Virus record (IMG/VR): IMGVR_UViG_3300032782_000001
Location: 62,001 to 126,000 of that record
Reading direction: 5' to 3' (one strand)
DNA length: 64,000 nucleotides
Part shown: in pieces, positions 13,500 to 36,963 of the stretch
Layout of the letters: the number at the start of each line of letters is the position of its first letter
Numbering within the stretch: the first letter of the stretch is position 1
Translations under genes and position numbers: made by a program
The notes under the pieces: model-generated
Seen by the model: only the letters and a program-made list of their open reading frames with translations
Database searches by the model: none
What the model was told of the DNA's origin: nothing

Positions 13500-13855
13500 A
13501 CCAACTCCAATTCTTCGCCAATCAAGACTTCCGCCAACCCCCACGTTCCATCTTCGTGTGCCACAACACGTGTCACACGGACGAATTCTGGGGGAAGAAT
13601 TTCTGCGATGGCACTGGACGCCATTGAGACTCCTTTTACTTCCACTTCAGCCAAATCGTGTGGATCCACACGACCTTTCGCGAAGATGGCCGTTTCGCCG
13701 GTCGGAATGATTAGCTTGGACAAGTTCCCACGGATTCCACGTTTTACCCAAACGTACAACCCTTTTTGTCCTCCTTCCGATGCGACCATCCAAAGGTCTA
13801 CACGAGGAATACCGCCCAACAGCAGCCTCACTCCTTTCTCAGCTTTCAGTTTCAT
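13496..13855 (-). CDS. hypothetical protein
   Basis: in operon, overlaps neighbours. Confidence 0.55.
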   Translation of the reverse strand: MKLKAEKGVRLLLGGIPRVDLWMVASEGGQKGLYVWVKRGIRGNLSKLIIPTGETAIFAKGRVDPHDLAEVEVKGVSMASSAIAEILPPEFVRVTRVVAHEDGTWGLAEVLIGEELELV

Positions 13856-14321
13856 GGTCCGTCTTCAATTCCGGCTCGATTTTGACTGCTCCGTGTTTCT
13901 TGACAATGTGTTCGATAGTCTTAGTAGTGGAAGGCATTCCGGGAAGATCAGGGATGATGACGAGTTCTACATCAGTCCCTTCAAGTCCATGAATCACCTT
14001 TTCGTCACATAACATGTCCCAGAATGGATTATTCTTGAACATGAGACGGACGTTGAATCGACGGACGATAGCGTCGAGACGTTTGACATCTCGAAGAATG
14101 AATGCGGAGGATACGACTTTGAGTCCGTTGATGATCTCAAGTCGTTGAGTTTCGGAGACAATTGGGCGGGCGTGCCCTTTGGCCGCCCGCACCAAATCGT
14201 CCGAATCTACTGCGACGAGGAGTCTATCACATAGACTACGGCATCTCTGCAAGTACAGAAGATGACCATAATGAAACAGGTCAAAACAGCCCGTCGTCAG
14301 TCCGACGACGATCTCTCTCAC
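13839..14321 (-). CDS. cytidylyl/adenylyltransferase (RfaE-II/TagD-like HxGH family)
   Basis: TTGCFDLFHYGH, AVDSD, KGHARPI, STT motifs. Confidence 0.85.
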   Translation of the reverse strand: MREIVVGLTTGCFDLFHYGHLLYLQRCRSLCDRLLVAVDSDDLVRAAKGHARPIVSETQRLEIINGLKVVSSAFILRDVKRLDAIVRRFNVRLMFKNNPFWDMLCDEKVIHGLEGTDVELVIIPDLPGMPSTTKTIEHIVKKHGAVKIEPELKTDHETES

Positions 14322-15121
14322 GGCGATCCGAAACCGCCCGCTGCCACCTGGCTAAAGGCCGCTGCCGCCTGGCTGGCTCGAACGGCAGACTGGCTGACGA
14401 GGATGAAGGCTTTCCGGATCTCCGAAGGACTGTTCGTCGGAAGAAGAATCCAACTTCCATCGATGCCCATCTGTTCGAAAACCCTGCGGAAGTCGGTATG
14501 ACCACCGTCATCGATTCCCATGGCCGCGATGATGTGGCTCTCCTGCCTACGAAGGTCTCGCACGAGAGGTTCCACTGATGCAGGTCGCCGATGGGTCGTC
14601 GAGTGGACATCCGCTCCGTCGGTCACGATGACGGTCACCGTACGGACCGGAACGCCAGCGTCCGAGAACTCTTGGCTCTTGGCCAAGACCTGTCCGAGAG
14701 TGACCGCCGTCTGATCGTAGAGGGGCGTCCCTCCATTGGCCCGATAGTTCTTGTTGTCGAGCTTGGGAGCATTGTCAAGCGTGACGTACGGGTAGATGGG
14801 CGCCGTCCCGTTGAGGGTTCTGCAGCACACGAGAATCCCGTCTTTCTGCTTCGACTTACCAAGTGCCTCAATCACGAGATTGACGCCATCTCGTACGACC
14901 TGTTCGTTCCCCGCGTCTCGAATGGAACCGGAGTCGTCGACGAGGAAGGTGACAAGCAGAACCTCTGAAGCTTGCACATCATCCACCTTCACGCCGAGGC
15001 CTGCCTGGATGGCCGCTCCCATGTCGGGAATGTTGAGGACCGCAGCGCCAGCGGCGGTGATGGTATTCTCCGCCTGAGCGGTCTGGAAGAGACTGTTGAC
15101 GTTGTTTGCGTTCTGGCTCAT
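14318..15121 (-). CDS. von Willebrand factor A (TerY-like) protein
   Basis: MIDAS DDSGS, GGTPLYD, VIVTDG; start at MSQNANN preferred. Confidence 0.85.
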   Translation of the reverse strand: MSQNANNVNSLFQTAQAENTITAAGAAVLNIPDMGAAIQAGLGVKVDDVQASEVLLVTFLVDDSGSIRDAGNEQVVRDGVNLVIEALGKSKQKDGILVCCRTLNGTAPIYPYVTLDNAPKLDNKNYRANGGTPLYDQTAVTLGQVLAKSQEFSDAGVPVRTVTVIVTDGADVHSTTHRRPASVEPLVRDLRRQESHIIAAMGIDDGGHTDFRRVFEQMGIDGSWILLPTNSPSEIRKAFILVSQSAVRASQAAAAFSQVAAGGFGSP

Positions 15122-15422
15122 CGTTTGATCCCTCGTCGATATTCCTTGTAATTCTCCAACACCCGTTGCTGGTGCTCCCAATCGTGAGGTTTGAAACTCA
15201 CTTCTGGGATGTCGGTCGGTCCCAACTTATTGGCTCCATGCTTTGGCACAGTTCCAACAGGTTGGGACAGACAACTCTGGACATTCTCCGCACCGAGTCC
15301 TGACCTTCCGCAAACAGGACAGGTCACAGTTTGGAAGGGGTAGTCAGTCAGTTCGACTTCTACCCCCTGCCCAGTACACCAGGTCTTGCTCATGTAGACT
15401 GATACTTTTACAGTGATTCGAT

Positions 15423-17201
15423 CTACAGACGGATCCCCTCCCAGCTCGCAAGGGGGTCGGTGCTCCGATGCAGCTTCATCCCTGCATTCGCAAACTTGGC
15501 GAGTGCAATTTCCGTCTCCGGAGTGTAGTCCCGATACGGGGTGACGACGGAGCTCATACAATCCGTCAAGATGTGACACTTGGCGGCGAGCTTCGGATCC
15601 TGGACGAGGATTTCCTCGAGCAAATCCTCGATGCTCGACTTGACGCAATGGGAAGCGGCCTGACCTGCGATGATGACGGCATCGTAGCTCAGAAGCTTCT
15701 TGATGAACGACGTGTTCCTCTGCGCGAGAGCCTTGCCGTCATGCCGAGTAAGGACCTCGGGAGACAGAACGGAGTAGTTCTCGGTCAATGGGTGTCCACC
15801 CTTGACCTCACAGTTGGACTGCGTACCACGCGCCCATGCGTGGAAGAACTGTGCTTCGTTCAGGAGGCCGAGGAGTGAATGCCCGGGCGAACCGAGCAAG
15901 CAATGGAACGGCCAGCAGAGGAGCGTATACTTGCCCTTCTTCTCCAGCTCCCTGCAATAATGCGCCATGTACTGCGTGAGCCACGTGTAATTGCCATCGC
16001 AGAGCCACGAGGCAACCGCCGGGTTGGGTCGAACCTTTCCCTTGAGGACGTGTTCGGTCGTGATCTCGGTGAAAGTCGGAAGATGATTCCCGTCCTCGCC
16101 GAGCCACATGGAACGCACGAAGATCTGCTGCGAGAAGTGCGTATCCATCGTGAACGTCATGTCCGTGATGTGATGCATGTTGCGATAGATCCAAGCTGCC
16201 TTGCGAGCCGAATCCTCGATCGCACCGCGCTGGCTCCTGCCACCAACGTAAAGAGACCCCTGCGGGTGCAAGAAGTCCTTCTGGTCGTCGATGTTCAAAA
16301 CGTGAATCCGGAAAGCGTCCTTGCCAGATGGCTTGATGTCGTGCTGCTTGGCCCAGGCGACTGCATCGTCAAAGAGCTGATTGAGATTCGGAGCGTAGTT
16401 GTAAGACTCGGCATTCCTCGGGTCGAAGAACACCGGGAGAGGAAGTTCATCTTTGTGCTGTGACCTGGCCGTGATGGCGGCGAGCGCCGACGACGGGAGG
16501 GTGACATTGATATCCATGATCCGATGCGGGAACTTGGACAGTGGCTCATCCGGCACGATGAATTCGGGAACGCCGCGCTGACCGCTCGTGTTGCGCGTGT
16601 AACCGTTGCCCGTGTACTGCTCCTTGAGGTACACGGTGAAATAGAGGAAAGCTCGACATTCCTCGAGGGTGCCCTTGCTGGCTTGGAACCTGTCAATCGA
16701 CATGTAGCGTGGGTCTTTCGACCCAATATTGTCAACTTCCTTGAAGGAATACCCGAGCTTCGCCTCGATGCCAGGCAAATCCTCCGGCTGGAGGTTGCAA
16801 ATGGCGGCCCGGTGAGGCTTGATCTTCGACCAGACCTCCGGGTACTTCTCCTCGACAATAGACAAGACGTTGTCCCATGTGCCGAGCTTGCAAGCTTGCT
16901 CGGGGAAGATGACGAGCTTGACGGTCGTCCCGCCCTTGATCTTGCTCTCGATGTAGGCGTCGTCCCAGCCGACCTTCTGCAGCATCTCATAGCCGTTGAG
17001 GCCGAGAAGGCCCTCGAGACCTGAAGAATCGACGAGGAAGACTACTCGTCGATTCGGGTCATCGGTGAGCCTATCGAAGGCTCGGGGATTCTGCTTGAGA
17101 TTCCCGCGGGTGATGCGGCCTGCGAGACCCGTCACCTTCTGTGAAGCGGTCTTGCCGCTGGTGAAGAGCTTCTCGTATGCGTCGAGGATGGCGTTATTCA
17201 T
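15423..17201 (-). CDS. nicotinamidase/isochorismatase-family protein with extra ~245 aa N-terminal domain
   Basis: IDDQKDF, GSLYV, MDTH, WPFHC, KG..ENYS, AGQAASHCV motifs. Confidence 0.85.
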   Translation of the reverse strand: MNNAILDAYEKLFTSGKTASQKVTGLAGRITRGNLKQNPRAFDRLTDDPNRRVVFLVDSSGLEGLLGLNGYEMLQKVGWDDAYIESKIKGGTTVKLVIFPEQACKLGTWDNVLSIVEEKYPEVWSKIKPHRAAICNLQPEDLPGIEAKLGYSFKEVDNIGSKDPRYMSIDRFQASKGTLEECRAFLYFTVYLKEQYTGNGYTRNTSGQRGVPEFIVPDEPLSKFPHRIMDINVTLPSSALAAITARSQHKDELPLPVFFDPRNAESYNYAPNLNQLFDDAVAWAKQHDIKPSGKDAFRIHVLNIDDQKDFLHPQGSLYVGGRSQRGAIEDSARKAAWIYRNMHHITDMTFTMDTHFSQQIFVRSMWLGEDGNHLPTFTEITTEHVLKGKVRPNPAVASWLCDGNYTWLTQYMAHYCRELEKKGKYTLLCWPFHCLLGSPGHSLLGLLNEAQFFHAWARGTQSNCEVKGGHPLTENYSVLSPEVLTRHDGKALAQRNTSFIKKLLSYDAVIIAGQAASHCVKSSIEDLLEEILVQDPKLAAKCHILTDCMSSVVTPYRDYTPETEIALAKFANAGMKLHRSTDPLASWEGIRL

Positions 17202-17225
17202 GGGTTTCCTTCTGGGTATGACTCG

Positions 17226-19091
17226 TCAAGAGATGACGAGGAGCGAGATTTCTTGCCTTGATACTGCGTAGAGTCCGGCATTTGCGGCGATAAGTTTCAT
17301 TCCTGCGTCCACGAATGGCTCCGTATCAGGAAAGGTCTTCATCACCGACGCGGAGCCATTCTCTGCCTTGACTTGGACCACACCTTGATCGGTCGGGACG
17401 AGCAGTACGCGGTTCACGGCACAACATCCGCGAATGTTGGAAAGCCAAGACCCGTCGCCGGCTTCGGCTTCTGCCGAAGCTTCCACAGCGCCGTCGGGCC
17501 GCAGGACCGTGCAGCGATTGACAGTCTTGCTGCCTTCTTGAGTCGAAGTCAGGAACCAAGCCCTGTCTTTCGACAATTCGCAAGTTGCATCGATCAGTTT
17601 TCCTCTGATCAGATGAACTTTGACAGAATCGTTGATTCCGCCAGATTTGGTTCCGAACACGAACGACCTGACAAGTTGTCCAGCCCTGTAAAAGCCGAAT
17701 CCAAAGGTCTGCCCTGTCCAGAATAAAGTTTGGCCTCCAAGAACGTCCCCGATCCTTTCCGGACCGAGCCGTCCTTCCTTGTACAGAGAGTCCCCATGGA
17801 CCCAGAACAAGTTCTCATCATTCGTATCGAAGATAGTCAATGAACCAAGAAGATCTGCATCCGTCCTGCCCGCGGAAGTTCCTCCTACGAGTTTCACGAC
17901 GATCCCGTCTCTAGCCATGAAAGTTGATCTACCCTGAAGTCGGAACCTAAGCCTCGGATCAATTTGACCGTCTGCCACTCGTGAAGAATCTTCACGAATA
18001 AACTTCCCATTGTCGTGATAAAGCCAAATGAGGCGGCCTTCGTGGAGGTCGGCCCTTACTATAGTTCCGCGGGTTTGGAAAATCCTTGTAGCTTTCACCT
18101 GGCCCCGGATTTCCACATGTGCTTTGACAGCTTCAGGTACAATAGTGGAACAGTGGGGACATGAAGTGCGAGCGTGTTCTGCTCCACATCCTGAGCATTT
18201 TGTCCAATGGAGCCTCTCGAGCAGACTAGCAGGAAATGGTCCCCTCTCATCTCGCTCGAATACGAGATGGAACCTCTGCAAGAGATCATCCGGCAAAACA
18301 CCGTATGGAATGGCGGGCTTCGGGTATTTCACTTCCGGGTGGAAGACTGTAATTCGTTTGAGAGGCCTTGCTGAATGGACTAAAGCCTTCGTCGGATCAT
18401 GCGGTTTATAAGTACCTCCGAACGGGTCCGTGAAGAGAAGGCACTGGAACACCATTACGAAGAATGCATACCAATCCGAATTCTCGTTATGAGCCTTCAC
18501 GAGATGGAGGCTGTTGGCAGCAGGATCACAAAGAGTTGGATCCACAAATCGCTGCGTGAAAACAGAGCAACGGAATTTCCCGAATTGCATTGAATCGGCA
18601 TCAATGAAATCCGCGTCCTTCCCCGTTACCATGACATTCAAATCATTGAAATCGCCGATAACCGCTCCCGCCTTGTGTATGGCGTCTACGGTAATCCTCA
18701 TCCCCTTGAGAATAGAAATGACATCTTCGGTGCTGATAGCCTGACGGAAATTGCGTTGCGTGTAACGAAGGAGAACTTCCGCCCCTTTCAGCATTCGCAT
18801 CACATATCCGACAGTCCGTCCTTTTCCATCCAATGCCAAGGCATCTGGAATAACGACATGGCCTGGCATACCTTTCGGGAATGCGGGCAATTTCAATTGA
18901 TGCTCTTCAATCCTGCGAGATGCTGCTGCTTGAGCTTCGGGTTGACCGTCGAAGTCGGGATGGTCAGGTCGCTTAAAGATCTTCACAACCTGATCAGTGC
19001 CGAATGGATAGATCTCCGCTTCTCCTCCTTGACCGAGAATTTTGCTCGGATCCAGCCGACTCTTTTTTCCGTCAACCCAGATGTCAGGCAC
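17226..19091 (-). CDS. Ser/Thr protein kinase (TerY-P type) with CxxC and beta-rich C-terminus
   Basis: LGQGGEA, VKIFK, IGDFNDLNV, IDADS; GTG start at 19091 overlaps the PP2C stop. Confidence 0.88.
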   Translation of the reverse strand: MPDIWVDGKKSRLDPSKILGQGGEAEIYPFGTDQVVKIFKRPDHPDFDGQPEAQAAASRRIEEHQLKLPAFPKGMPGHVVIPDALALDGKGRTVGYVMRMLKGAEVLLRYTQRNFRQAISTEDVISILKGMRITVDAIHKAGAVIGDFNDLNVMVTGKDADFIDADSMQFGKFRCSVFTQRFVDPTLCDPAANSLHLVKAHNENSDWYAFFVMVFQCLLFTDPFGGTYKPHDPTKALVHSARPLKRITVFHPEVKYPKPAIPYGVLPDDLLQRFHLVFERDERGPFPASLLERLHWTKCSGCGAEHARTSCPHCSTIVPEAVKAHVEIRGQVKATRIFQTRGTIVRADLHEGRLIWLYHDNGKFIREDSSRVADGQIDPRLRFRLQGRSTFMARDGIVVKLVGGTSAGRTDADLLGSLTIFDTNDENLFWVHGDSLYKEGRLGPERIGDVLGGQTLFWTGQTFGFGFYRAGQLVRSFVFGTKSGGINDSVKVHLIRGKLIDATCELSKDRAWFLTSTQEGSKTVNRCTVLRPDGAVEASAEAEAGDGSWLSNIRGCCAVNRVLLVPTDQGVVQVKAENGSASVMKTFPDTEPFVDAGMKLIAANAGLYAVSRQEISLLVIS

Positions 19092-19917
19092 GGTGCAAAA
19101 TTCTCCTTCCAGAAACGAAAGTCGTGTCGTCTTCCAGCAAACCTGGAAATCTGGACCCGACTCCTCCATTAGCAAGGACGAGGTGACGCCGTCCAACATC
19201 CGCGTTGAGGAAGAATTTTTCATCCTCCCAAAGCTGACTCATGGGTCCGACAGTTCGAGTCTTTCCAGGAAGCGGTTTGTCCGCTGACTTATGAAGTGAA
19301 GTCAACCCGTCGCTCCCGATCAAGAAGCTTTGAAGGTCTTCAGTCTTCATCGCCTTATGCACAACGAATTGCATTTGTTCCTCCTTCATGGAGGTCTTCA
19401 CAAGCCCGTAGCCAAGATATGGCGGCATATTGCCTTCGAATGGCCCAAGGAATGATGTCTCCCCGTTCACAGAGATGCACCCATCGCCGATAGACGCGAA
19501 TTCGGTCCGTTCGGGGGTAATGACAACGCAAACAACAGTGAAGAGAAAATAGTCGTTGACGAACGATGGATTCACACGCCCTTCGGAATCTTCGGCACCA
19601 ATCCCCCGAGCCCACTTTCGCATCTCCCAGAGGGCGTCCCGTCGGATAATAGACCAGGCCAGAATTTCTCTGGGGTTCCGAATAGTCCATCCAGATCGGA
19701 CTCGAAGGTGGTCAGCGATTGTGTGGGTCAGAAGAAGAGACCCGAATTGTGCTCCGACTTCGCTATACTTACCGCTCGAGCATCCGTCGCAAACCACTGC
19801 GATTGTGAAATCCGAAGTTTGGAGAATCGATACCCCATCCTGATTGTTCTTGCCAGCTCGGATATGATCATATCCGGGAATACTCCCGCGAGCCAGTTCG
19901 AAAATGTTCTGCATCAA
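19084..19917 (-). CDS. PP2C-family protein phosphatase
   Basis: NNQD, VVCDGCSS, SIGDG, GSDG, DDTT motifs. Confidence 0.9.
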   Translation of the reverse strand: MMQNIFELARGSIPGYDHIRAGKNNQDGVSILQTSDFTIAVVCDGCSSGKYSEVGAQFGSLLLTHTIADHLRVRSGWTIRNPREILAWSIIRRDALWEMRKWARGIGAEDSEGRVNPSFVNDYFLFTVVCVVITPERTEFASIGDGCISVNGETSFLGPFEGNMPPYLGYGLVKTSMKEEQMQFVVHKAMKTEDLQSFLIGSDGLTSLHKSADKPLPGKTRTVGPMSQLWEDEKFFLNADVGRRHLVLANGGVGSRFPGLLEDDTTFVSGRRILHRA

Positions 19918-19969
19918 ACTGATTTACATCTAGCTGGCCAGGATTTCTGATCAGGTGTATTGTGGTGAA

Positions 19970-20512
19970 GTGGAATTCTTCAAGAAGCCGTGGGAAGAAT
20001 TATCCCCCGAGGAGCGAGAAGCCCGTGGAAAGTGGGTTCACTCTGAACTCGCGAGATATCAGGCCGAAGATGACGCTTGGAAGGATGAGATGGATAGGCA
20101 AACGATCTTGGAGTCAGAACGAAGGCACGAACTGGAAGACGTAAATGGTGCCGCTGGGCGATATGAAGTCCGGAAAAAGTGGTTCCAAAATGATGGGGAA
20201 CCGAACCCGAAACTTCGTCATCAAGCTTTTTGGTTCATTCATAACTGCGTAGCTCACCCAATGCTGGGTTTGTTTCCGAATAGGCAAGCTGTCCAATTCC
20301 ACAGTTTGACTTCATCATGGTTGAATAAAGAGCGGGTAGAAATTAGCGATAGCGATCGCTACCCGATCCAAGCTCCCAAAATTCCGAACAAGAAAGCTTG
20401 GATTCTTCACAACGTCGTAGCCCACGTGGCTATCGGTTTGTGGCCATCCGAATGGACTTTCCGATTCCATGACGAATCTGCGGAGAAGATGAAAGTTCCG
20501 GGCTGGGTCTAA
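19970..20512 (+). CDS. hypothetical protein with duplicated W-x-x-HN-x-VAH motif
   Basis: FWFIHNCVAHP...FHSLTS and WILHNVVAHV...FHDESA; start uncertain. Confidence 0.7.
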   Translation: MEFFKKPWEELSPEEREARGKWVHSELARYQAEDDAWKDEMDRQTILESERRHELEDVNGAAGRYEVRKKWFQNDGEPNPKLRHQAFWFIHNCVAHPMLGLFPNRQAVQFHSLTSSWLNKERVEISDSDRYPIQAPKIPNKKAWILHNVVAHVAIGLWPSEWTFRFHDESAEKMKVPGWV

Positions 20513-20514
20513 TA

Positions 20515-20748
20515 ATGGAACCCGAGAAAAAGGATCTTCCTGTAGTCCAATCGGAAGACGGATCTCTTCGGTTTGCCGATAACCCCGTTGGAAGAAGACT
20601 CCGAAATCTCGGGATCATTACTTCCGTTGGTACGACCGCAATCCTTCTAGGAGCGACCGTTTTGGGTCTCCCTACGGGTCTAGTCGTCGGGTTGTCTCTT
20701 ACATTCTTCTGTCTGATGATCCGTCTCGGAATTCGGACTATTCGGTGA
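20515..20748 (+). CDS. small two-TM membrane protein
   Basis: two hydrophobic segments. Confidence 0.55.
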   Translation: MEPEKKDLPVVQSEDGSLRFADNPVGRRLRNLGIITSVGTTAILLGATVLGLPTGLVVGLSLTFFCLMIRLGIRTIR

Positions 20749-20963
20749 TCCTGGAATTACATATTTCCGGACTTCATATCGAGATCCATCTGCATACTCA
20801 GCACACAAGCCGAGCCACTTCTTGGCGTTTTCCTCGGTGAAAGATAACCGCGGCGAATCGAAGCAGTCCAAAATCCAAGTCTTCTCGACGAGGTCGTAGA
20901 CACCCCAGCAAACTCTTCCTGGATAGAAAAGATCCGCTATTGTGGCCATAACCTCTCCGAAGG

Positions 20964-20997
20964 AGAGAAGGGCCACGAGATCTCGTGGCCCTTCTCT
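20964..20997. terminator. perfect 34 bp palindrome just downstream of the MVP gene; probable terminator hairpin
   Basis: AGAGAAGGGCCACGAGA|TCTCGTGGCCCTTCTCT. Confidence 0.55.
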
Positions 20998-21002: not shown

Positions 21003-23609
21003 TCAGGCGTGCGGTTGGGTCGTGCCGTTAGTGGCGGCGGGAAGAAGGTGCTTTGCCAGTGGCGAGCCTTCAACCATTTTGCGGAGGACCTCGAGAACGG
21101 AATCTCCTCCAAGGAGCGCCATGGGTGCCATCGACTTGGCAACCCTCTCAATGAGTTCACGTTCTCCGAACGAATTGAGTGCAGCAATGAGATCCGGCGA
21201 GACTGCCTTAGCCCTCTCGACATGACCTTGAATCTCGGCTTGAAGCCAGGCAACCCTCTGAGCGAGTTTGGCGGCTTCAAGTTCGATGGTCTGCTCTTCA
21301 GCAGCACGAACAGTATGGAGCTTGATTTGAGCTTCTTGAGCCCTAGCTTGTTCCATTGCCATGGAGAGCTTGCACTTCTCTCCATCGGTCTGATTTTGAG
21401 CATCGAGCTTGGCAAGATCCGATGCGAGAGAGGACTTGAGTTCCTCGAGAGCCAGTTCATGCTGCTTCACGACAGTCTCGGTCCTTACCTCGGCCGTCCG
21501 TTGTTTGATAGTCTCGGATTCACGGGTGAATTCGAGAATACGCTTCTCTTTGGCAAGGCTCAACGTGTGATTAATGACCTCACGTTGAGCATTGGTGAGG
21601 AGTTGAGCGAGATTCTTATCTTCGAGAGCGACGTCTAAGACTTCGATATCGTAGATGTTCATTCCGTTTTCTTCGAACTTCGTTCCCGTTCGAGTCACCT
21701 TGCCGTTGGAGGGATCGACGGTCTTTCCAAGAACGACATCACGAATGATATCATCTGATTTCGCGTAGAACTCCTCGACGCCGATCTTCTTGATCGCGTT
21801 GCGGAGCTTGGACCTCATGTGATCGCAAAGGAATTTGACGTAGTTCTCGACTCCGAACCACGACTCAGAATCCCCCTCGAAGTTCACTCGATACGAGACT
21901 TTCACGTCGAGCTTGCAGAAATCGGACGTTTCCACCTTTACGACGTCCGAGACCTTGTTTGCTCGGGTGAGAAGAAACGCAGTCCTGAGAAGATTGTCCG
22001 TCGTCTTGGGCTTCCCACGAGAGAGCATCAGAACTTGCGGCGACTCGTCGTACTCGAGAAGAACCGTCTGCGGTCCCACGACTACACGCTTCTCACCGCT
22101 CTTGCGGACGAGCATCATGGCGTAACCAGTCCAGACCTCTACCGTGACTGCCCCATCCCATTTCGTCTGAAGAGTGATCGTGCGCGGCGGAGTATACTGC
22201 GTCTTGCGTTCGAACTGGTCTCCGGAAAAACCCTTAGCAGGCTTATTCCCGAGCCCTCGAAGCATCGCATCGTCTCCGACGAGCCCTGCAGAGTACATGG
22301 CATTGGAAGAGATGTCCATACCGCGAATGGGAGCCGTGGCTGCAGCCGCTACGGCGACTGCTGCGGGAGACCCGATGGCTTCACTCAGATAAGAGGAAAG
22401 GTTCACTCCTGCGAGTTGAGCGTTGTATGCCATCGCTTCCGTGTTGCCAGGATATAGCATATCACAGATTTTCAAGTCGAGGATACGACGCGTGATAACT
22501 TCCTTCCTCGGGTCAGGAAGAAAGACCGTTGGGCCCCTGACGAGCTTGATATCACCGCTGTTGCGGTCGAGAACATACCGTGCTTCACCGGCAGGAATGG
22601 CGATACCGTAGAAGACATCCGAATTGTCGTACTTGACAATCGCATGCTCTTCCCGCGGGAAATAAATCATCTGCTGGCGACCGGTGATGAAGAGTTCGTC
22701 TCCGACCTTATGTTGCTGGCCGTCTTCTTCATAATCGGCGATGACTTTGACGTAAATACCGGAATTTTCGTTCAGCTCAATGGCCTTGTGCTTTCGAGTC
22801 TTGTTCGTACCGCCGGCCTTACCATCCGAAATTTCGCGCGTGGCGAATACTTCAGTAGGCCTCGGAAATACGACCTGAGGACCGCGTTCATAACGCTTAT
22901 TCCCGTTCTCATCGTAGAGCAGGCAGTATTCCAACCGGCCGAGGGTTACGGCCTCACGAACGAGGTTGCCGTTCTCATCTGCCACGACCTCCACACCCGT
23001 CGGAGGAATGTAGAAGGAGACTTCAGTTCCCTTGATGACAAGGAGCTTGCCCATAGTGAGATCGGGCGGGGATTCGCTGGTAAGCGTGTAATCTGGGTCC
23101 TGAGTTGCTTCCGTTCCGGGATCCTTCTGGACCTGCGTCTTGATGATGGCATTCTTCCAGTTCTTGGTCGCTGCCTCTTCATCGTAGACACGAACGAGAA
23201 GATACTGATTGGAACGGATATGATGTCCCTTCAGCACCTTGGCCATCTGACCAGGCCATAGAGCGAAGCTCACGGGACCTGGAGTGTTGACTTTCCGGCC
23301 GATTTCAAGCTCGGAAGTGCTGGCCTTTCCAGGAATAGAAGGCCTTTTCCCATCCTTTGCAGGATTCTTGAGGACGATGTACCATCCTTCAGGAGCGGTT
23401 TTGACCGTTTGAATGGCTTCCTTGAGCTCTACCCGCTTGAATCGCTTAGTGGATTCATCAAAGATTACGGGTTGATCAGTGCCCGACAAGCTTTGCTTCG
23501 TCGGGCCTACGAAGACGTCGATGATACCTTTCGTCTCGTCAGAGACATAAAGATATTCATTGGGAGCGAGAATCATATCACGCTCTCGGCGATTACTTTC
23601 TTCTGCCAT
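21003..23609 (-). CDS. major vault protein (MVP) homologue: vault repeats, SPFH-like shoulder, cap helix
   Basis: repeated xxGP-containing vault-like repeats; RVVVGPQTVLLEYDE.PQVLMLSRGKPK...SDVVKVETSD..KLDVKVSY..NF resembles the MVP repeat-9/shoulder region; long C-terminal coiled coil; 868 aa; AGGAG SD. Confidence 0.85.
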   Translation of the reverse strand: MAEESNRRERDMILAPNEYLYVSDETKGIIDVFVGPTKQSLSGTDQPVIFDESTKRFKRVELKEAIQTVKTAPEGWYIVLKNPAKDGKRPSIPGKASTSELEIGRKVNTPGPVSFALWPGQMAKVLKGHHIRSNQYLLVRVYDEEAATKNWKNAIIKTQVQKDPGTEATQDPDYTLTSESPPDLTMGKLLVIKGTEVSFYIPPTGVEVVADENGNLVREAVTLGRLEYCLLYDENGNKRYERGPQVVFPRPTEVFATREISDGKAGGTNKTRKHKAIELNENSGIYVKVIADYEEDGQQHKVGDELFITGRQQMIYFPREEHAIVKYDNSDVFYGIAIPAGEARYVLDRNSGDIKLVRGPTVFLPDPRKEVITRRILDLKICDMLYPGNTEAMAYNAQLAGVNLSSYLSEAIGSPAAVAVAAAATAPIRGMDISSNAMYSAGLVGDDAMLRGLGNKPAKGFSGDQFERKTQYTPPRTITLQTKWDGAVTVEVWTGYAMMLVRKSGEKRVVVGPQTVLLEYDESPQVLMLSRGKPKTTDNLLRTAFLLTRANKVSDVVKVETSDFCKLDVKVSYRVNFEGDSESWFGVENYVKFLCDHMRSKLRNAIKKIGVEEFYAKSDDIIRDVVLGKTVDPSNGKVTRTGTKFEENGMNIYDIEVLDVALEDKNLAQLLTNAQREVINHTLSLAKEKRILEFTRESETIKQRTAEVRTETVVKQHELALEELKSSLASDLAKLDAQNQTDGEKCKLSMAMEQARAQEAQIKLHTVRAAEEQTIELEAAKLAQRVAWLQAEIQGHVERAKAVSPDLIAALNSFGERELIERVAKSMAPMALLGGDSVLEVLRKMVEGSPLAKHLLPAATNGTTQPHA

Positions 23610-23743
23610 GTAAATTACTCCTGTCGTTCAGTCGAAATCAACGATTACACTCGAACACCTAGTAATAAGGGTACCGAAGTCGTCAGGACAAGATTCAGAA
23701 ATTTTTTCCTCGGCCAAGTAGAAGGCGTCGGAGGTTAAAACCA

Positions 23744-24474: not shown

Positions 24475-24675
24475 ATGCCGCTGACACGCATCATTCTGAC
24501 CGACAGTCCCAAGTCCCTTCATGACTGGGAAGGACCCATCCCAGATTCGGACAGACTTGGAATCTATGTCTACACGTGTGATGCGTGTTCAGCCAAAGCG
24601 ACCCGTGAGGAATTGAAAGGACGAGCTAACGAGCTGTGTCCGACTAAGATCGTCCGAGAGGTCATGGATTCATGA
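24475..24675 (+). CDS. HxW-CxxC protein with VMDS tail
   Basis: HDW...CDAC...C; ends VREVMDS*. Confidence 0.65.
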   Translation: MPLTRIILTDSPKSLHDWEGPIPDSDRLGIYVYTCDACSAKATREELKGRANELCPTKIVREVMDS

Positions 24676-24914
24676 GTCACGGACCTAACCCTAAAACATT
24701 CCGTGGGTATCTTATCCGGAGTGTAGACCGCCAGGGACCGGCTTATCATTTCGCCGTAGACACCTGCCCAGAGCGAGAAGTTTTGTTTCGTACCTGGTCG
24801 AGTGATGGGGAACTAACGACTTGCGAGATGAATCCTGAAGAGGCGATCGGGCTGGCCAAAAAGCTGCAGGATTATGCATTCCTTGTGATCGTCAGAGACG
24901 TCATGGGATCGTGA
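24672..24914 (+). CDS. small protein with VMGS tail
   Basis: ends VIVRDVMGS*. Confidence 0.65.
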   Translation: MSHGPNPKTFRGYLIRSVDRQGPAYHFAVDTCPEREVLFRTWSSDGELTTCEMNPEEAIGLAKKLQDYAFLVIVRDVMGS

Positions 24915-25120
24915 TGGTCAATCACGTCTGGACAGAAGCGGGGACATGGGAGAGGTATAGTAAGGGATTTCTACGTACTGGGAAGAAATTCCAGTGTTCT
25001 CGCTGCGGATGCACTGTCCAAACTGGTCCAGAGGGGAGGATCGACGGTCTAGATCTTGAGGATTCGGACATTCACAATGATTGCGATTTGCAAGTCGTTG
25101 ATAACGTGATGGAATCGTGA
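24911..25120 (+). CDS. HxW-CxxCG protein with VMES tail
   Basis: HVW...CSRCG...DC; ends VDNVMES*. Confidence 0.65.
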   Translation: MMVNHVWTEAGTWERYSKGFLRTGKKFQCSRCGCTVQTGPEGRIDGLDLEDSDIHNDCDLQVVDNVMES

Positions 25121-25362
25121 ATAACCTCAAATATTGCGGACATGAATTGAATCCACATCAACTCTGCACTAACTTGGCTACACAATGGTCCAAAAATTTA
25201 TTTGACCTACCAGGCGCTTACCCGTCGCCAATCGTTGCTCGGTGTTCTCACCATCAAATAAATGCACACTACGTCGGTGGTGGCCTACCTGGCTCTTTTT
25301 CCGACACTCGTTTCTACGCCTCTTTCGAAGAAGCAATCGTCGCAGAGGTCATGGAGTCGTAA
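25117..25362 (+). CDS. small protein with VMES tail
   Basis: ends AIVAEVMES*. Confidence 0.65.
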   Translation: MNNLKYCGHELNPHQLCTNLATQWSKNLFDLPGAYPSPIVARCSHHQINAHYVGGGLPGSFSDTRFYASFEEAIVAEVMES

Positions 25363-26987: not shown

Positions 26988-29903
26988 GTGGCAATCGGCG
27001 TAACCGCATACTCGACTTCCAAAACACCAAATCTGGTGGAAGCCATTGCAGTTCTGACATCGACTGAGTCGATTCCAGATCCTGTCAGCGTGCTGGTATC
27101 CAATATTGCACAGGTTTATGGCGCCTTACAAATCACACAAGGAGCATTTACCTTATCAGAATTGTCTCTGACAAAGTCCACTCCACCGGCCAACCAATCT
27201 TCTTTTTCTTACACATTTGTAATCCGATTCAATTCTCCAGGTCTTTACACGCCAGGAAGGTTCCAAGGTCCACCTGGTCCTCAAGGGCCCCCAGGTCAAT
27301 TCCAAGGTCCACCTGGTCCTCAAGGGCCCAGGGGGCTCACCGGGGCTATGGGCATCAGGGGTGTTCCAGGGCCTATGGGTCCGGTCGGTCCTCCTGGTTT
27401 CAACGGCGCCACCGGACCCATGGGTCCGCAGGGGGCCACCGGTCCGGGAGGTGGCCCTCCAGGCGCAACCGGTCCTGCAGGGCCGCAGGGTGCAACTGGA
27501 CCTTTTGGAGCGACTGGACCACAAGGTGTAGCTGGAGCGACTGGACCACAAGGTGTCACAGGACCATTTGGGCCAACTGGTCCCCAAGGACCAGCAGGAC
27601 CGGAGTCTGGTGGAGGAAACGTTTTCGTCTACCGAGACTCAGAACCATCGCCAAACAACACAACAGTCTTCGCTTCATTTGATGAAGCGTATTCGGCGGC
27701 TATTTCTACAAATGCTCCGGCTGTTATTGTCAGTGACGACACGCTCGGGGACTGTGTCGTAGGCAACGCCTACGGCAACAATGCCACCGTCGATTCTGTA
27801 GTGGGTTCCACGGTCACGCTCAAGGGCCTCCATGGGTTGAATACAGGGCTCGTCGGCAAATTGATTGGCATTTCCAACGCGACGAGTCCTGGCACGAACG
27901 GTCTATACACCATCACGGCGATCCTTTCATCGAAGAGTCTTCAGATAGCGAACGCAGCAGCCACTATAGACGACATTTTCGAGTGGCGTCTCGTCGATGG
28001 AAGCACAGCGTCTCTCACTCCTGGCCCGTCCAATTTGGTTCTTATTCAGGGTGCCGTCGTTCCTAACGGAACGAATAGCCCGCCAGGTGCATTTTCATCG
28101 GCGAGTGTTGGACAGACAGTCACCCTCACGAACGGCCTCTCTGGAAATAATGGGACCTTCCCCATCGTCGCGTATGTCTCGCCTTCGTCCGTATGGATCC
28201 AGAACGCCTCTGGTGTTGGCCCCGATAGTGTGTATCTCGTGGCCGCGAGTGGCAGTACAGCCTCGATCATAAGCTGGGACTCCATCCGCAATACGGCTAT
28301 CCTTACAGGCCTTTCGAGTGTCCCTCCGCAGACGGATGGTTGGCACATCATCATCACTGGATCGGCAAGCAACGATGGCATCTACCAAGTTGTACGCACA
28401 CTCTCGACGACTTCCATCGAGATCCGTTCGTACGGAGCCACAGCGCCCGATGCGAACAACGGCGCCATCTCATGGAATCTCTGCCCATCGAATGCATTGA
28501 TCCCGTTTGCCGCTGTGCCAGTCCTGTCCGTCACGGGTCTCAGTAGCGTGCCCAGTTCGGCGGTTGGGAACGCACTGAGCCTCGGCAACGCCACGACTTC
28601 CGGCAACAACGCCTCTTCCGCAATCCTTGGGTGGGTTGACGCCACATCCGTCTATTTGAATTCATTCAATGGAAGCTTCGTGGCACCAGATCCGAACAAC
28701 GGTTCTCTTTGGTGGTATCTCGGCACAAATTACGACCTCAGCCGCATCACGCTCACAGGGCTCGGTGTGCCTTTCGGCGGCTCTTCCTTGTCTGTCCTCG
28801 AAGGCGCAACCTTCAACCAAGGTATAGCTGCCGTCATCAACTCCTTGGAGGTAGCGGGAGAAGGGAGCCTACAGCCTTTCTACGGGACGCTTGCCCTAGT
28901 CGGCCCATTCAATAGCCTGCTCAACATCTCTGATGGGAGTACGATTAGCTGCAACTCCAAAGACTTTTTTGACCTTAGCTGGGGGCTCGCGACCCTAAAT
29001 GTGACGGTGGCCTCCCAAGCCGAAATTGATAACCTTGCATGGACGGGAGACAACTATAACGCAGGTCTCAATGTCACCATGTCCGGAGGTGCTGAAGTTG
29101 GCGGGGACCTTATTTCTGGTGGCGCGGGCTCCGTGGGGATCACGATCCTGGATGCGACAGTTAATCCACCGCCCGTGACTTTCGGCGGCTATTACGGAAC
29201 GCCAGGGAGTGGTATTCAAATCACATATGAAGCCACAGCCGCTTCTCTTGTCCCATTCACACAGAATGGTCCACCTACTCCCAATAATTCAGGGCAACCT
29301 CAAGGTCAATACAATGTCGATGTCGGAACGATGTATTTCGATTCCGGCTCGAAGCAACCATTTTGGTGGGATGGTACGCAGTGGGTTTCATACGTTGCTC
29401 CGTCGTTCGCCACGACTAACGTATATCAGGGCCATGCCTCTCCCCAAACTACGAATTTGAATGCCGGCGACCATGTAATGTTTGACTCGTCCGACACCGA
29501 AACTGGTGGCGGAAACATTAGTCTTGACACCACATCGCCATATCAAACGGCACCAGGTCCAAGTATTGGTCGTATCTCACTTGCCGCAGAGCATCTTTAC
29601 AAACTCACGTTCAATCCTTCGCAAGTTTCCGGCGCTGGGAATATTTATTTCCAATGGTTCGTCTACAATAGTATTTACCCGAACGGTCAAGCCATGGGGA
29701 ATGGCACGCGGATGGACGATGGTACTAATGTTGGTGACTTTGCAAGTCATGGCCCGTGTGTCGCGTATGTATACACAAATTCTGGGAGTGGCGGTGCTGG
29801 CACCGCCGAGATCCGTATCACATTTAATAATTCGATAACGGGACTCGGGGAAAATGCGGCATCTCCTCTTTACGCGTGGTTTACCGTCGAGCAAGTCTAC
29901 TAA
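26988..29903 (+). CDS. collagen-repeat virion fibre / decoration protein
   Basis: long Gly-X-Y tract followed by repeated beta-rich Ser/Thr/Gly domains; 971 aa. Confidence 0.85.
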
Positions 29904-29940
29904 ATTACGTAGACCCGGCTTTTAATGATTCCATAAGTCC

Positions 29941-30924
29941 GTGGGTATTAACATAAGTGCGTTCGCCAAGTCTCAAGACTCAGTTTCTCTTGAGGGTGTG
30001 GCCGTACTTAACTCTGATACCCAATTAGCAAGCCCCGTCAGCACTCTCATCGCAAATCTTTCTGGTGTTTACAGTGCTCTTGGAATCAGCTCGAATACTC
30101 TTATTCTGACGGAGTTATCTTTCGTACGAGCCACCCAACCTTCCGCTCAAAATGCTCAATATAGCTATTCTTTTACCATCCGATTTGGTATTATTGGTCA
30201 ACCGCAACTCGGACGGTTCCAAGGACCTCCGGGTCCACCTGGACCAGTCGGTCCAATGGGGCCTTTCGGCCCGCCAGGATCTCCCGGACCTACAGGTTTT
30301 ACTGGTCCCTTCGGTCCCACTGGCGTAGCTGGTCCACCAGGAGCCACAGGACCTGTAATCACAGGGCCAGCCGGTCCGACGGGTTTTCCGGGTTCAACTG
30401 GGGCCGCTGGAACTACAGGTCCCCAAGGTCCCACTGGGGCCGCCGGAGCTACAGGTCCCCAAGGTCCCACCGGGGCCGCCGGACTTACCGGATTTACTGG
30501 TCCACAAGGAGCAACAGGAACAGCAGGACCAGTTGCTCCTGACGTCCACCTCTTTGATGGAATTGCCGGTCGATTCCAGACGGATGCCATTAGTGACGAA
30601 CTAGGCAGCATTGTCTTTAATCCATCGGCCATCCTTGCAGCTGGTTCCTTGACACGAACCATCAAACTTTTGGCCGTTTTGGAATGCTCAGTTGGTGGTC
30701 AGACTGCAAGTCTGGAACTTTTCAATTTGACTGATGCAATCTCCGTTGTCACGATTAGTACGAGCAACACTTCTCCGACCGTTGTTAGGTCTGCAACTCT
30801 TGTAGTCCCGACTGACTTGCCTAATAGTGAAAAGCTCTATGTCCTTCGTCTCACGAGGATGGGCGGAAGTTCCACTGATCTCGTGACTTGCAAACGGGCT
30901 GCCTTGGAGATCGTATACTCATGA
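29941..30924 (+). CDS. collagen-repeat protein (N-terminus paralogous to 26988 gene)
   Basis: Gly-X-Y tract; shared ~90 aa N-terminal domain ending GRFQGPPGP. Confidence 0.85.
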
Positions 30925-33238: not shown

Positions 33239-34585
33239 ATGGACGCTTCTATTCACACGGATCTCTACCAACTCACGATGGTTGCCGGATACTTCCACCG
33301 GCAAATGACTGGTTCCATGGCGACATGTGAGATGTTCGTCCGAAGGCTCCCGGAGCGTCGAAAATATCTTGTCGTAATGGGTGTCTCTAAAGTCATCGAC
33401 TATTTGGAGAAGCTCCACTTCTCTGAAGAATCTACCAGCTATCTGAAACAAATCCCTGGTATCCGAGACGCCATGACTCCGGAGTTCGAGGATTTTCTCC
33501 GGGATTTCAAATTCACTGGAGACGTAGACGCGATGCTTGATGGGACCATTGCATTCGCCAATGAACCCATCATTCGGATTCGCGCTCCTCTTGCAGAAGC
33601 GCAACTTGTCGAGACTTTCATCCTCAGCACCATCAATCATGCTACTTCTGTAGCCACCAAAGCAGCTCGAATCGTGAAAGAAGCTGGTCATGCCCGTTGC
33701 GTGGAATTTGGAACTCGGCGGACGCATCCGGAAGCGGCGGTAGACGCGGCTTATGCTGCTTGTCGAGCTGGATTCGTCGGAACGTCCAATGTCGCGGCCG
33801 GCATGAAATACGGTCTAAATATCACTGGAACGGCTGCCCATATGTGGACGATGGCGCATTCGAGCGAAGAAGACGCGTTCCGGTCATATGCGGAAGTTTT
33901 TCCGAATTCTTGCATCTTGCTCATCGACACCTACGACACCGAGAAGGGCGCAGAGCGAGCTGCGAAGATTGCACGGGAAAAATTGGCGGGCGTCCGGTTG
34001 GACTCCGGCGATCTACTCGTCTTGAGCAGGGCTGTAAGGCAGATTCTAGACTCGCACGGTCTGCAAAAGACCGAAATTGTTGCATCTGGCGACTTAAACG
34101 AATATAAGATCCGGTCGTTGCGTGAAGCAGGAGCTCCCATCGACGTCTACGGCATCGGGACTGATCTCGTCGCCTGCATAGATGCTCCGGCCCTTGGTGG
34201 AGTATATAAACTCGTCGAACTCGATGGGCGTCCTACCGCGAAATTTTCGGAATATAAATCCACTCTCCCTGGACCCCACCAAGTCATCAGGATTCAAGAG
34301 AATGGACACCTTCGCCAAGATACGATCGTCCTTGAAGACGAAACGTTGGATTTTCTCGGTCCTCCTGGCGTCTCAGCGCTGCTCGAGCCTGTCATGAGGG
34401 CTGGATGCAAGACGATGGATGGTGAAATTACGGAAATCGTACAAAATCGCGTGCGTCTCGGGCTTGACTCTCTCCCTAAAGAAATCTTGGATATCGCGTG
34501 TCCATTCACTTGTGAATTCAAAGCGTCCATTTCCACTCGTTTGCAGAGCCTTCAGGATCGACTCCGGGCATCATTTCGGAAATGA
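33239..34585 (+). CDS. pncB: nicotinate phosphoribosyltransferase
   Basis: TDLYQLTM, EFGTRR, GTSNV, GTAAH, LIDTYDT, GVRLDSGD, SGDLNE, GIGT, GVYKLVE. Confidence 0.95.
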   Translation: MDASIHTDLYQLTMVAGYFHRQMTGSMATCEMFVRRLPERRKYLVVMGVSKVIDYLEKLHFSEESTSYLKQIPGIRDAMTPEFEDFLRDFKFTGDVDAMLDGTIAFANEPIIRIRAPLAEAQLVETFILSTINHATSVATKAARIVKEAGHARCVEFGTRRTHPEAAVDAAYAACRAGFVGTSNVAAGMKYGLNITGTAAHMWTMAHSSEEDAFRSYAEVFPNSCILLIDTYDTEKGAERAAKIAREKLAGVRLDSGDLLVLSRAVRQILDSHGLQKTEIVASGDLNEYKIRSLREAGAPIDVYGIGTDLVACIDAPALGGVYKLVELDGRPTAKFSEYKSTLPGPHQVIRIQENGHLRQDTIVLEDETLDFLGPPGVSALLEPVMRAGCKTMDGEITEIVQNRVRLGLDSLPKEILDIACPFTCEFKASISTRLQSLQDRLRASFRK

Positions 34586-35490: not shown

Positions 35491-35565
35491 GAACCCGTAG
35501 TTCAGCGGTAGAACGACTGGCTTTTAACCAGTGCGCCGTGAGTTCGATCCTCACCGGGTTCACCA
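35491..35565 (+). tRNA. tRNA-Lys(TTT)
   Basis: cloverleaf, CCA. Confidence 0.9.
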
Positions 35566-35580
35566 GTCGTAAGACTGAAT

Positions 35581-35652
35581 GGATCCGTAGTTCAGAGGTA
35601 GAACAGCTGGCTCTTAACCAGCGTGTCGAGGGTTCGATTCCCTCCGGATCCT
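35581..35652 (+). tRNA. tRNA-Lys(CTT)
   Basis: cloverleaf. Confidence 0.9.
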
Positions 35653-35722
35653 CCGGGCCACGAAAGTGCCTGACGTGTCACATGCGTGCTTCTGCACGCC
35701 ACGGTTGAGAAGTGTTCATCAT

Positions 35723-35796
35723 TCGGGGTTAGGACAGTGGCAGTCCAGCGGTCTCTGACACCGCCAACGTGAGTTCGATTCTCACACCCCGGACCA
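35723..35796 (+). tRNA. tRNA-Gln(CTG)
   Basis: GCGGT-CTCTGAC-ACCGC, CCA. Confidence 0.85.
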
Positions 35797-36027
35797 AGCC
35801 CAGACAAAGGTGCAGGGCTTCGATCTCTGACAATCTAACGCAGAGCGATTGAGAAGGCTCAAGGCAGCTGGAAGTTGCCAAAAGTCTTCAAACCGGGAGC
35901 TTCATGCCGCAGCCAGGTGGAAGGTGTGGAGCTCCCGGGAACCGAACTCGTGTCGGTTCAGGTCTGAAAATAACCAACGGTGGGTCCCGAAAGGGTTAGC
36001 GGGTTCGACTCCCGCTTTCAGATCCAT

Positions 36028-36329: not shown

Positions 36330-36352
36330 TTACAAGCTCGGTAATGTCCTTC

Positions 36353-36886: not shown

Positions 36887-36888
36887 AT

Positions 36889-36963
36889 GGTGACGAAGCT
36901 CAATGGTAGAGCAGCAAGTTGTTAACTTGTCGGAAGAAGGTTCGATTCCTTCCGTCATCGCCA
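36889..36963 (+). tRNA. tRNA-Asn(GTT)
   Basis: CAAG-TTGTTAA-CTTG, GCCA end. Confidence 0.85.

Follow-up and report, generated by a model that had tools for sequence, protein, structure and literature searches.

A full-length major vault protein homologue of the prokaryote type in a complete 436-kb tailed phage

The 64,000-nucleotide stretch of DNA analysed here (the window) corresponds to bases 62001-126000 of the 436,316-bp IMG/VR record IMGVR_UViG_3300032782_000001, which comes from a wetland metagenome, has direct terminal repeats and is rated 100% complete. At positions 21003..23609 on the minus strand, the window encodes a major vault protein (MVP) homologue; MVP is the subunit of the hollow vault particles found in animal cells. 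We show that this gene is a bona fide member of the MVP family, of the prokaryote/phage type, which is intact, under selection and located in the genome of a complete tailed phage. By analogy with its eukaryotic counterpart, the product probably builds a self-assembling, vault-like shell in the infected cell. In mammals, MVP alone forms a closed, two-halved cage with 39-fold halves, and the function of the vault has been an open question since 1986.

Phage MVPs are already known in kind from a 2023 preprint, and the present one is not a first: two human-gut Caudoviricetes (ctOa11 and ct2Ri15) were described in silico as carrying the "first viral MVPs" (Santos et al. 2023, 10.1101/2023.11.10.566534). 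What is added here is the scale (at least 304 viral contigs, including a 735-kb record), the split between phages and bacteria, the architecture of seven modules and an invariant keyhole loop.

Identity and domain architecture

A first-pass annotation had described the gene as an 868-amino-acid open reading frame (ORF) with a strong Shine-Dalgarno sequence and a hairpin after the stop codon, located in a probable jumbo phage, and each of these features was recovered. The frame starts with ATG, contains zero internal stops and fills exactly the span given above. The motifs quoted in that annotation are all present in the translation, namely VFVGPT (residues 31-36), YERGPQVVFP (240-249), KVGDELFITG..IYFP (300-318), LVRGPTVFLP (356-365), RVVVGPQTVLL...VLMLSRGKPK (508-535) and SDVVKVETSD (554-563). 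The sequence AGGAG precedes the start codon, and a perfect 34-nt palindrome (20964-20997) follows the stop codon. The complete record also encodes a portal protein and a large terminase (at 358-362.6 kb), collagen-like (collagen-repeat) tail fibres (window 26988-30924, on the opposite strand and 3.4 kb from the MVP gene), 44 tRNAs, EF-Tu, RtcB, and HNH and GIY-YIG endonucleases. The features of the gene and its product are as follows.

21003..23609, minus strand: MVP-homologue gene, 868 amino acids, 96 kDa, pI 6.1, with the stop codon within the span
23618..23622, minus strand: Shine-Dalgarno sequence AGGAG, 8 nt 5' of the MVP ATG, from direct sequence reading
22479..23585, minus strand: N-terminal β-repeat wall, residues 9-377, six β modules as predicted by AlphaFold2
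22155..22478, minus strand: R8-like segment, residues 378-485, predicted by AlphaFold2 as four short helices followed by a disordered insert (418-469)
21963..22154, minus strand: last repeat (R9-like), residues 486-549, matched by Pfam Vault_3
22005..22025, minus strand: keyhole loop L-S-R-G-K-P-K, residues 529-535, from alignments to rat MVP
21618..21962, minus strand: shoulder (SPFH-like) domain, α/β, residues 550-664
21207..21617, minus strand: cap helix, residues 665-801, one unbroken helix in the AlphaFold2 model, which aligns with the rat cap helix
21006..21206, minus strand: C-terminal tail at the cap-ring position, residues 802-868, modelled by AlphaFold2 with low confidence as short helices
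20959..20999, minus strand: 41-nt intergenic insert with the 34-nt palindrome, strain-variable

A Pfam search, which the first-pass annotation had proposed as a check, matched MVP_shoulder (PF11978) to residues 551-663 over profile positions 3-117 of 118 (101.5 bits, cut-off 25, E 4e-29), and Vault_3 to residues 504-546 (41.8 bits, cut-off 28.8, E 1.2e-10). Both domains were matched in all 50 of the 50 family members searched, while the Vault repeat model PF01505 was only marginal in the phage protein. The same annotation had stated that matches to a generic SPFH/band-7 domain alone, without vault repeats, would speak against its proposal; what was observed instead is a Band_7 score below the cut-off (16.8 versus 23.6 bits, E 0.0075), with Vault_3 above its own. 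Band_7 is detectable in 21 of 50 relatives. MVP chains alone were matched when the PDB sequences were searched with phmmer (rat and human MVP, E 4e-17), with residues 504-804 of the query aligned to residues 475-786 of rat MVP. With a profile built from 128 relatives, the match rose to E 6.7e-43, and weak, collinear N-terminal matches were added along with a murine R1-R7 fragment (E 1.4e-4). On these comparisons the resemblance to MVP is far beyond chance, and homology is close to certain. The shoulder, the N-terminal vault β-repeats and the long cap helix with its tail, which define the family in the Pfam sense, are all present in the phage protein, and they follow each other in the order that had been claimed: β-repeats, last repeat, shoulder, long cap helix and tail.

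The AlphaFold2 model was based on 128 diverse sequences and has a mean predicted local distance difference test (pLDDT) value of 82.5 and a predicted template-modelling (pTM) score of 0.62. It replaced a first run with 50 close relatives, which left the repeat region unmodelled (pLDDT 59.8). The six modules of the wall were placed at residues of about 9-61, 62-118, 119-203 (with a disordered insert at 160-186), 204-256, 257-315 and 316-377. Comparison of the profile to itself divided the modules into two weakly related classes, one with modules 9-61, 204-256, 316-377 and 486-549 and the other with modules 62-118, 119-203 and 257-315. The second insert, at 418-469, is rich in Ala, Val and Gly, poorly conserved and modelled with a pLDDT below 50, and the family consensus is undefined there. 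The cap helix aligns to rat residues 647-812.

We compared the phage protein to canonical MVP (rat 4V60/4HL8, human 9BW5 and the MVPs of some cyanobacteria), to which it is ~17-25% identical. The phage MVP appears to have about seven repeat modules as compared to nine (R1-R9) in canonical MVP, because the profile alignment contains a gap, rigid fits are offset and BLASTP skips a segment of the cyanobacterial protein. In the profile alignment, ~83 rat residues between R1 and R6 are without a phage counterpart. The rigid fits of the model to an MVP chain are offset by ~96 residues, and those with a low root-mean-square deviation begin two repeats in (model residue 70 on chain residue 166, 3.1 Å over 427 residues; model residue 32 on chain residue 144). 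BLASTP aligned phage residues 14-318 with residues 20-281, and phage residues 295-815 with residues 366-832, of a canonical cyanobacterial MVP (L208, 886 amino acids), which matches human MVP at E 2.4e-294 and contains all five Pfam vault domains; residues 282-365 of that protein were skipped, about 85-100 residues in all. The overall length of the phage MVP is restored by the disordered inserts at 160-186 and 418-469, and its cap helix is shorter (137 residues) than that of canonical MVP (~156 residues). The canonical eukaryotic vault has, in addition to its nine repeats, the minor components TEP1 (TROVE), vPARP and vault RNA. No TROVE/TEP1 homologue was found in the 436-kb phage genome, in a search in which control genomes gave matches; a PARP search of the phage genome gave no match, but neither did the controls; and no vault or Y RNA was identified at Rfam gathering scores within the 64-kb window.

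A putative vault-like shell and alternative roles

If the analogy with eukaryotic MVP and its SPFH relatives flotillin, HflK/C and prohibitin holds, many copies of the protein would be made in the infected cell and line up next to one another. A closed cap would result from the parallel cap helices, a ring from the shoulders and a barrel from the β-repeat wall, and two such halves would meet at their conserved, charged N-termini to give a soluble, hollow shell. With about seven modules per subunit versus nine, the barrel would be shorter than that of the mammalian vault, which measures roughly 67 nm, and since no neighbouring gene is conserved (see below), the shell is probably self-sufficient.

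Several points weigh against such a shell and its proposed ligand. The two absent repeats and the two disordered inserts could alter or block closure of the shell. Our search of the literature returned no experimental study of a prokaryotic or phage MVP, and thus no report of experimental cage formation by a protein of either type. No RNA-seq run containing the MVP gene was listed. Finally, in the nucleotide pocket described for human MVP (see below), the phage MVP has N, N, V, E and D in place of H509, D521, W545, P565 and K573, respectively.

Rather than closing into a shell, the protein could sit as a single dome on the inner membrane of the host, where it would organise a patch of membrane or shield it, as a membrane-associated scaffold of the SPFH type (flotillin, HflK/C, stomatin-like). 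We consider this unlikely. The SPFH/Band-7 cages (flotillin, HflK/C, prohibitin, stomatin, erlin) are membrane-anchored and have no β-repeat wall, whereas the phage MVP contains no transmembrane segment, hydrophobic hairpin or other anchor; the Kyte-Doolittle mean over 19 residues peaks at 1.32, within an Ala-rich loop that is not conserved, and the N-terminus is charged. The position of the SPFH N-terminal anchor is held by 480 soluble residues of vault β-repeats, which superpose on the vault wall, and the protein is predicted to be soluble. The Band_7 score is below the gathering threshold, and full-length MVP chains score better than any SPFH protein, with E-values that differ by more than 17 orders of magnitude. 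No phage MVP is present in BFVD, a library of viral structures, and the best match there is A0A3G5A4K1 from Harvfovirus sp., an 802-amino-acid "prohibitin domain-containing protein" aligned over the whole length (E 9.7e-13, 944 alignment columns). This protein of a giant eukaryotic virus may itself be MVP-like.

A place in the virion, as an internal head protein, a decoration or an ejected protein, was among the possibilities raised in the 2023 preprint, which named a virion or shell role (10.1101/2023.11.10.566534). Huge phages have many uncharacterised structural proteins, and the genes for the collagen-like tail fibres lie 3.4 kb away, on the other strand. Such a role is nevertheless rather improbable, as the portal/terminase module is located ~275 kb from the MVP gene, the gene has non-structural and differing neighbourhoods in related phages, and ~50%-identical genes are present in the chromosomes of cultured bacteria such as Nannocystis and Enhygromyxa. 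The related huge phages retain the MVP gene at differing positions. Its PP2C, kinase-like and 592-amino-acid neighbours in the window recur beside it in L012, the nearest relative. In L013, it is placed between the genes for DnaB and primase, also near a DNA polymerase gene, and adjoins homologues of genes that are more than 90 kb away in this phage. The genes around it in L016 and L017 are homologous to further, different regions of this phage genome.

Family distribution, phylogeny and genomic integrity

We searched viral and bacterial sequence collections for relatives of the phage MVP. In a word-index search, 8,000 candidates were scored and 4,857 matched at E ≤ 1e-3; the best relatives were 79%, 68% and 63% identical, many were located on contigs of 200-460 kb, and many are named "major vault protein" by JGI. 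An exhaustive search of cluster representatives identified 1,324 clusters at 50% identity, with 638 of these at E ≤ 1e-30. At least 304 viral contigs in IMG/VR encode an MVP relative, and the best 80 of these include 38 contigs of ≥100 kb and 14 of ≥200 kb, with a maximum of 482 kb. Searches with tblastn revealed unannotated copies with 44-45% identity in the GenBank huge phages LR756501/LR756503 (735 kb, the largest record in the GenBank phage collection searched) and LR756500 (462 kb), as follows.

LR756501.1 17614-19590: unannotated huge-phage MVP (L096), 809 amino acids
LR756500.1 21372-23375: unannotated huge-phage MVP (L097), 827 amino acids

In the bacterial data, with one genome per species, 397 stretches encode an MVP relative. 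The best 80 of these show 48-54% identity in the best segment and cover residues ~1-866; they are carried mostly by Myxococcota (Nannocystis, Enhygromyxa, Polyangiales), Cytophagales, Sericytochromatia and Rifle/Ozemobacteria, and the carriers include complete chromosomes of cultured strains. Among the cultured carriers are Nannocystis exedens DSM 71, N. punicea FL3, Enhygromyxa salina DSM 15201 and Thermoflexibacter ruber DSM 9560. No MVP family model is present in PHROGs v4 or NCBIfam, and none of the PADLOC defence profiles matched the MVP.

In silico discussion of MVP homologues in bacteria dates back to 2013 (Daly 2013, PMC3762200; Sokolskyi 2019, 10.1101/872010). The prokaryote-type MVPs of the "chemotroph clade" (Myxococcota, Cytophagales and others) are among the closest known systems: full-length, collinear similarity within the range of ~40-55% was observed, with ~50% identity over the full length, the same order of domains and the same Pfam signature, in which the shoulder and Vault_3 are strong, the other repeats weak and Band_7 detectable. 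In these bacteria, too, the gene is solitary and without conserved neighbours, but the bacterial copies form a clade of their own with the phage copies outside. The MVPs of ctOa11 and ct2Ri15 resemble the present one in being full-length, phage-encoded and closer to bacterial than to eukaryotic MVP; their genomes are without TEP1 or vPARP, and they are known from sequence and predicted structure alone (10.1101/2023.11.10.566534). They were put forward as the sole viral examples and as lying within a subclade of bacterial MVPs, whereas the copy described here belongs to a phage-only group, a contrast that is drawn from the published descriptions, as ctOa11 and ct2Ri15 were not among the tblastn matches in the GenBank phage collection. 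For one of these two gut-phage MVPs, a 99%-identical protein is recorded under a Clostridium metagenome-assembled genome (MAG) (10.1101/2023.11.10.566534). Borg elements of Methanoperedens are also said to encode a predicted vault protein (PMC12660748). By description, these elements differ in being archaeal, in that the vault gene is sometimes tied to histone genes and in that TROVE proteins are encoded, none of which is seen in this phage.

A sample of Cyanobacteriota gave a match to the shoulder domain in 13 of 401 genomes, of which 2 are canonical and eukaryote-like (178-187 bits) and 11 are of the prokaryote type (~100 bits). Frames of ~476-488 amino acids with MVP_shoulder (40-108 bits) were found at L197, L205, L206 and L207 (cyanobacterial genomes G116, G001, G014 and G065) and represent a truncated paralogue class, present in addition to or in place of a full-length MVP.

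A phylogenetic tree was inferred from 159 sequences, comprising 78 bacterial copies, the window copy and 80 phage copies; the samples were the best 80 of pattern-based scans for each group, with the more divergent members left out. All 78 bacterial copies fell on one side of a single branch with a support of 100 in the Shimodaira-Hasegawa-like approximate likelihood ratio test (SH-aLRT), and all phage copies on the opposite side; the phage MVP did not branch inside the bacterial clade, whose internal order is broadly that of bacterial taxonomy. Diversity is roughly twofold higher in the phage group, with a mean patristic distance of 1.96 as compared to 0.98 for the bacterial group. Rooting was performed with two canonical cyanobacterial MVPs as the outgroup, standing in for eukaryotic MVP. 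A topology in which the bacterial MVPs descend from within the phage radiation, obtained with midpoint rooting and in a quick outgroup-rooted tree, was withdrawn as a search and long-branch artefact because a tree with an all-phage clade had a log-likelihood 57.5 units higher (approximately unbiased test, p-AU 0.94). The tree thus supports two separate groups of phage and bacterial MVPs in this sample, but no particular direction of transfer. Two sequences filed under bacterial MAGs, L016 (JBAZJM010000003.1, Lentisphaeria) and L017 (DATBQC010000966.1, Methylobacter), fell among the phages. Each of them has ten genes in common with this phage within 6 kb of the MVP gene, and they are therefore almost certainly mis-binned contigs of huge phages.

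Comparison with the copy in L012 (79% identity) gave a nonsynonymous divergence (dN) of 0.14, with synonymous divergence (dS) saturated; dN was lowest in the repeats and shoulder (0.09) and highest in the cap helix (0.36). These values indicate that the gene is under strong purifying selection. Bacterial homologues with ~50% identity are common (397 species), and a role as an auxiliary metabolic gene was proposed in the 2023 preprint (10.1101/2023.11.10.566534), both of which would suit a host gene that was captured recently and has no role specific to the phage, whether as a passenger or as an auxiliary metabolic gene. A recent capture is nevertheless very unlikely, given that no phage copy nests among the 78 bacterial copies, that the phage group is the more diverse of the two, and that the gene has been kept across related huge phages despite its shifting position and is under strong purifying selection. 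Strong selection, the presence in hundreds of large genomes and a separate phage lineage together imply that it has a role during infection. Experiments are far more tractable in phage-bacterium systems than in animal cells and, as the gene is solitary, heterologous expression of this ORF alone should reveal cage formation by prokaryote-type MVPs, if any, and the size of the cages, which would be of interest to engineers of vault nanocontainers.

An assembly or binning artefact, with a bacterial gene wrongly joined to phage DNA, has a negligible probability: the contigs of the source run (X1) do break 10 nt past the MVP stop codon, and metagenomic bins do mix phage and host (L016 and L017 were filed in bacterial MAGs), but the break lies within the perfect 34-nt palindrome, which is a typical place for an assembler to break, L012 from another run keeps the same neighbours, and the mis-binning runs the opposite way, as L016 and L017 are phage-like. 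The sequencing depth is 46.5 and 46.6 on either side of the break, and in an independent second sample (run X2) one contig runs from the MVP 3' end into the gene downstream; the equal depth and the bridging contig therefore show that the MVP gene is truly part of the phage.

The contig from this second wetland sample represents a related strain in which the 41-nt segment 20959-20999 is absent, so that 20958 is joined to 21000. The palindromic stretch thus behaves as a strain-variable insert, a small insertion/deletion element. The palindrome has a fold energy of -32.7 kcal/mol (z -5.3), and 0 of 200 shuffled sequences folded equally well. A reading of the hairpin as an intrinsic terminator was unsupported, as it is without a T-run and obtained no terminator score.

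Keyhole loop, gene neighbourhood and minor observations

Work from 2025-2026 ties the human vault to nicotinamide adenine dinucleotide (NAD+) and ADP-ribose, showing that human vaults bind NAD+, ADP and ADP-ribose between adjacent shoulders (PMC12280208; 10.64898/2026.05.01.722283). The human pocket consists of R504, K506, R507, P508, H509, R511, L517, D521, F522, W545, P565 and K573, of which R504, K506 and R511 in the keyhole loop hold the diphosphate (PMC12280208). Across the 128 phage and bacterial sequences, S530 and K535 are invariant (128/128), while G532 is present in 124 and P534 in 123 of the sequences. Human K506 corresponds to K535, and R504 to K533, which is K or R in 87 of the 128 sequences; the G-x-P-K frame is kept, and the pocket stays basic, with K and R dominating at positions 533, 542 and 552. 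The phage shell may therefore bind an anionic, nucleotide-like ligand at the basic loop L-S-x-G-x-P-K. We treat nucleotide binding as the most concrete lead on a ligand and not as a finding, because the human MVP residues in contact with ribose and nicotinamide are mostly not conserved in the phage MVP.

Three apparent NAD+-salvage genes are located near the MVP gene, encoding a nicotinamidase-like protein of 592 amino acids, an NMNAT-like protein and a NAPRTase (33239-34585, plus strand, 10 kb away). The C-terminal 343 residues of the 592-amino-acid protein are nicotinamidase-like, with a template-modelling (TM) score of up to 0.95 by matched model in the ESM Atlas; its best PDB sequence match is M. 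tuberculosis PncA (E 0.2). The domain is of the nicotinamidase/isochorismatase type. The three genes could form a route of the Preiss-Handler type, as used by phages against NAD+-depleting defence. A general linkage of MVP to NAD+ salvage was rejected, as the nicotinamidase-like gene is common to L012 and L116 alone; the salvage neighbourhood, confined to L012 and partly L116, does not speak for a general functional link.

A more far-reaching proposal is that huge phages keep an ancient vault lineage of their own, which acts with the encoded NAD+-salvage enzymes in an NAD+ arms race, and in which the shell binds or encloses NAD+, ADP-ribose or a related nucleotide via the keyhole loop. As a whole, this proposal is a long shot. 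If true, the shell and these enzymes would together safeguard a pool of nucleotides, or remove the products of defence, on firing of host NADase systems, in parallel to the reported NAD+/ADP-ribose binding of the human vault and the NADase activity of TEP1. As a corollary, phage vaults could then be the reservoir that gave rise to the bacterial copies.

A block of genes on the same strand is located downstream of the MVP gene. It is given here as context alone.

13839..19917, minus strand: same-strand block downstream of the MVP gene
19084-19917, minus strand: PP2C phosphatase (PF13672, 67 bits)
17226-19223, minus strand: kinase-like protein of 665 amino acids, overlapping the PP2C ORF
15423-17201, minus strand: 592-amino-acid protein with the nicotinamidase-like C-terminal domain
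14318-15181, minus strand: weak VWA match
13839-14321, minus strand: NMNAT-like cytidylyltransferase

The block from the PP2C gene through the VWA-like gene has tblastn matches in L012, in which the gene calls place a CTP_transf_like gene just past it, and it is absent from the other viral MVP loci except for one homologue of the 592-amino-acid protein in L116. The kinase-like and PP2C ORFs are kept in L012 (77% and 66% identity), and the former has weak matches to RSK/PKC kinase domains (E 7e-4) and to PADLOC PD-T4-6 (E 1.8e-5). No recurrent MVP neighbour was found when ORFs within 4-8 kb were clustered at 94 bacterial and viral loci, and tblastn of the window's MVP neighbours against the viral loci gave no matches. 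A conserved partner gene was likewise sought by comparing the whole phage proteome to 80 more viral loci and was rejected, since lineage-restricted neighbours alone were obtained: a PTH2-like gene of 112 amino acids (about six independent loci) and a DUF4326-like gene (five loci). The PTH2-like protein, with a likeness to peptidyl-tRNA hydrolase as judged by eye, adjoins MVP in L016 (5499-5804), L136-L138, L152, L153, L171 and L129/L151, while the copy of this phage (G000:C1:136588-136926) is located outside the window, ~53 kb from the MVP gene.

In three IMG/VR phages, a protein of ~640 amino acids with a Band_7/SPFH domain (86-101 bits) is encoded directly downstream of MVP (L006 10770-12692, L010 10732-12648, L007 2524-4437), and these phages thus pair MVP with a second SPFH protein. 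No such partner gene is present in this phage.

The small genes between the MVP and PP2C genes differ between the window (19955-20976) and L012 (12608-13890). The ORFs of 185 and 77 amino acids in the window are unlike the genes of 183 and 76 amino acids at the same place in L012, and only the ORF of 98 amino acids (20680-20976) is common to both. The interval is a small replacement hotspot; a local inversion relative to L012 had been suspected and was rejected, because the small MVP-adjacent genes of one phage are unrelated to those of the other. A gene for the RNA ligase RtcB (418 bits) is located ~10-15 kb from MVP in the window (7192-8400), in L012 (6982-9300) and in L013 (22433-22661). 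RtcB has 772 amino acids in L012 as compared to 402 in this phage, and the longer form may contain an intein or an extra domain.

The tRNA genes form an array at 35491-53165, with all 44 on the plus strand. Located within the array are genes for EF-Tu (39587-40768), a GIY-YIG endonuclease (40837-41733), an M16 peptidase (44778-46046), an HNH endonuclease (50595-51107) and an Rv2179c-like exoribonuclease (52099-52665), as well as a group I intron at 36050-36280 (Rfam RF00028, 76.6 bits, full-length model match). Four small ORFs on the plus strand at 24475-25362 overlap from start to stop by 4 nt. Each of the encoded proteins ends with ..[IV]V..VM[DEG]S, but beyond this ending they have little in common (25-38% identity). 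In the DNA, the common tail takes the form of a repeated GAGGTCATGGAnTC[A/G]TGA-like signal, which looks like a conserved ribosome-binding and coupling signal within the gene ends and not like a protein motif.

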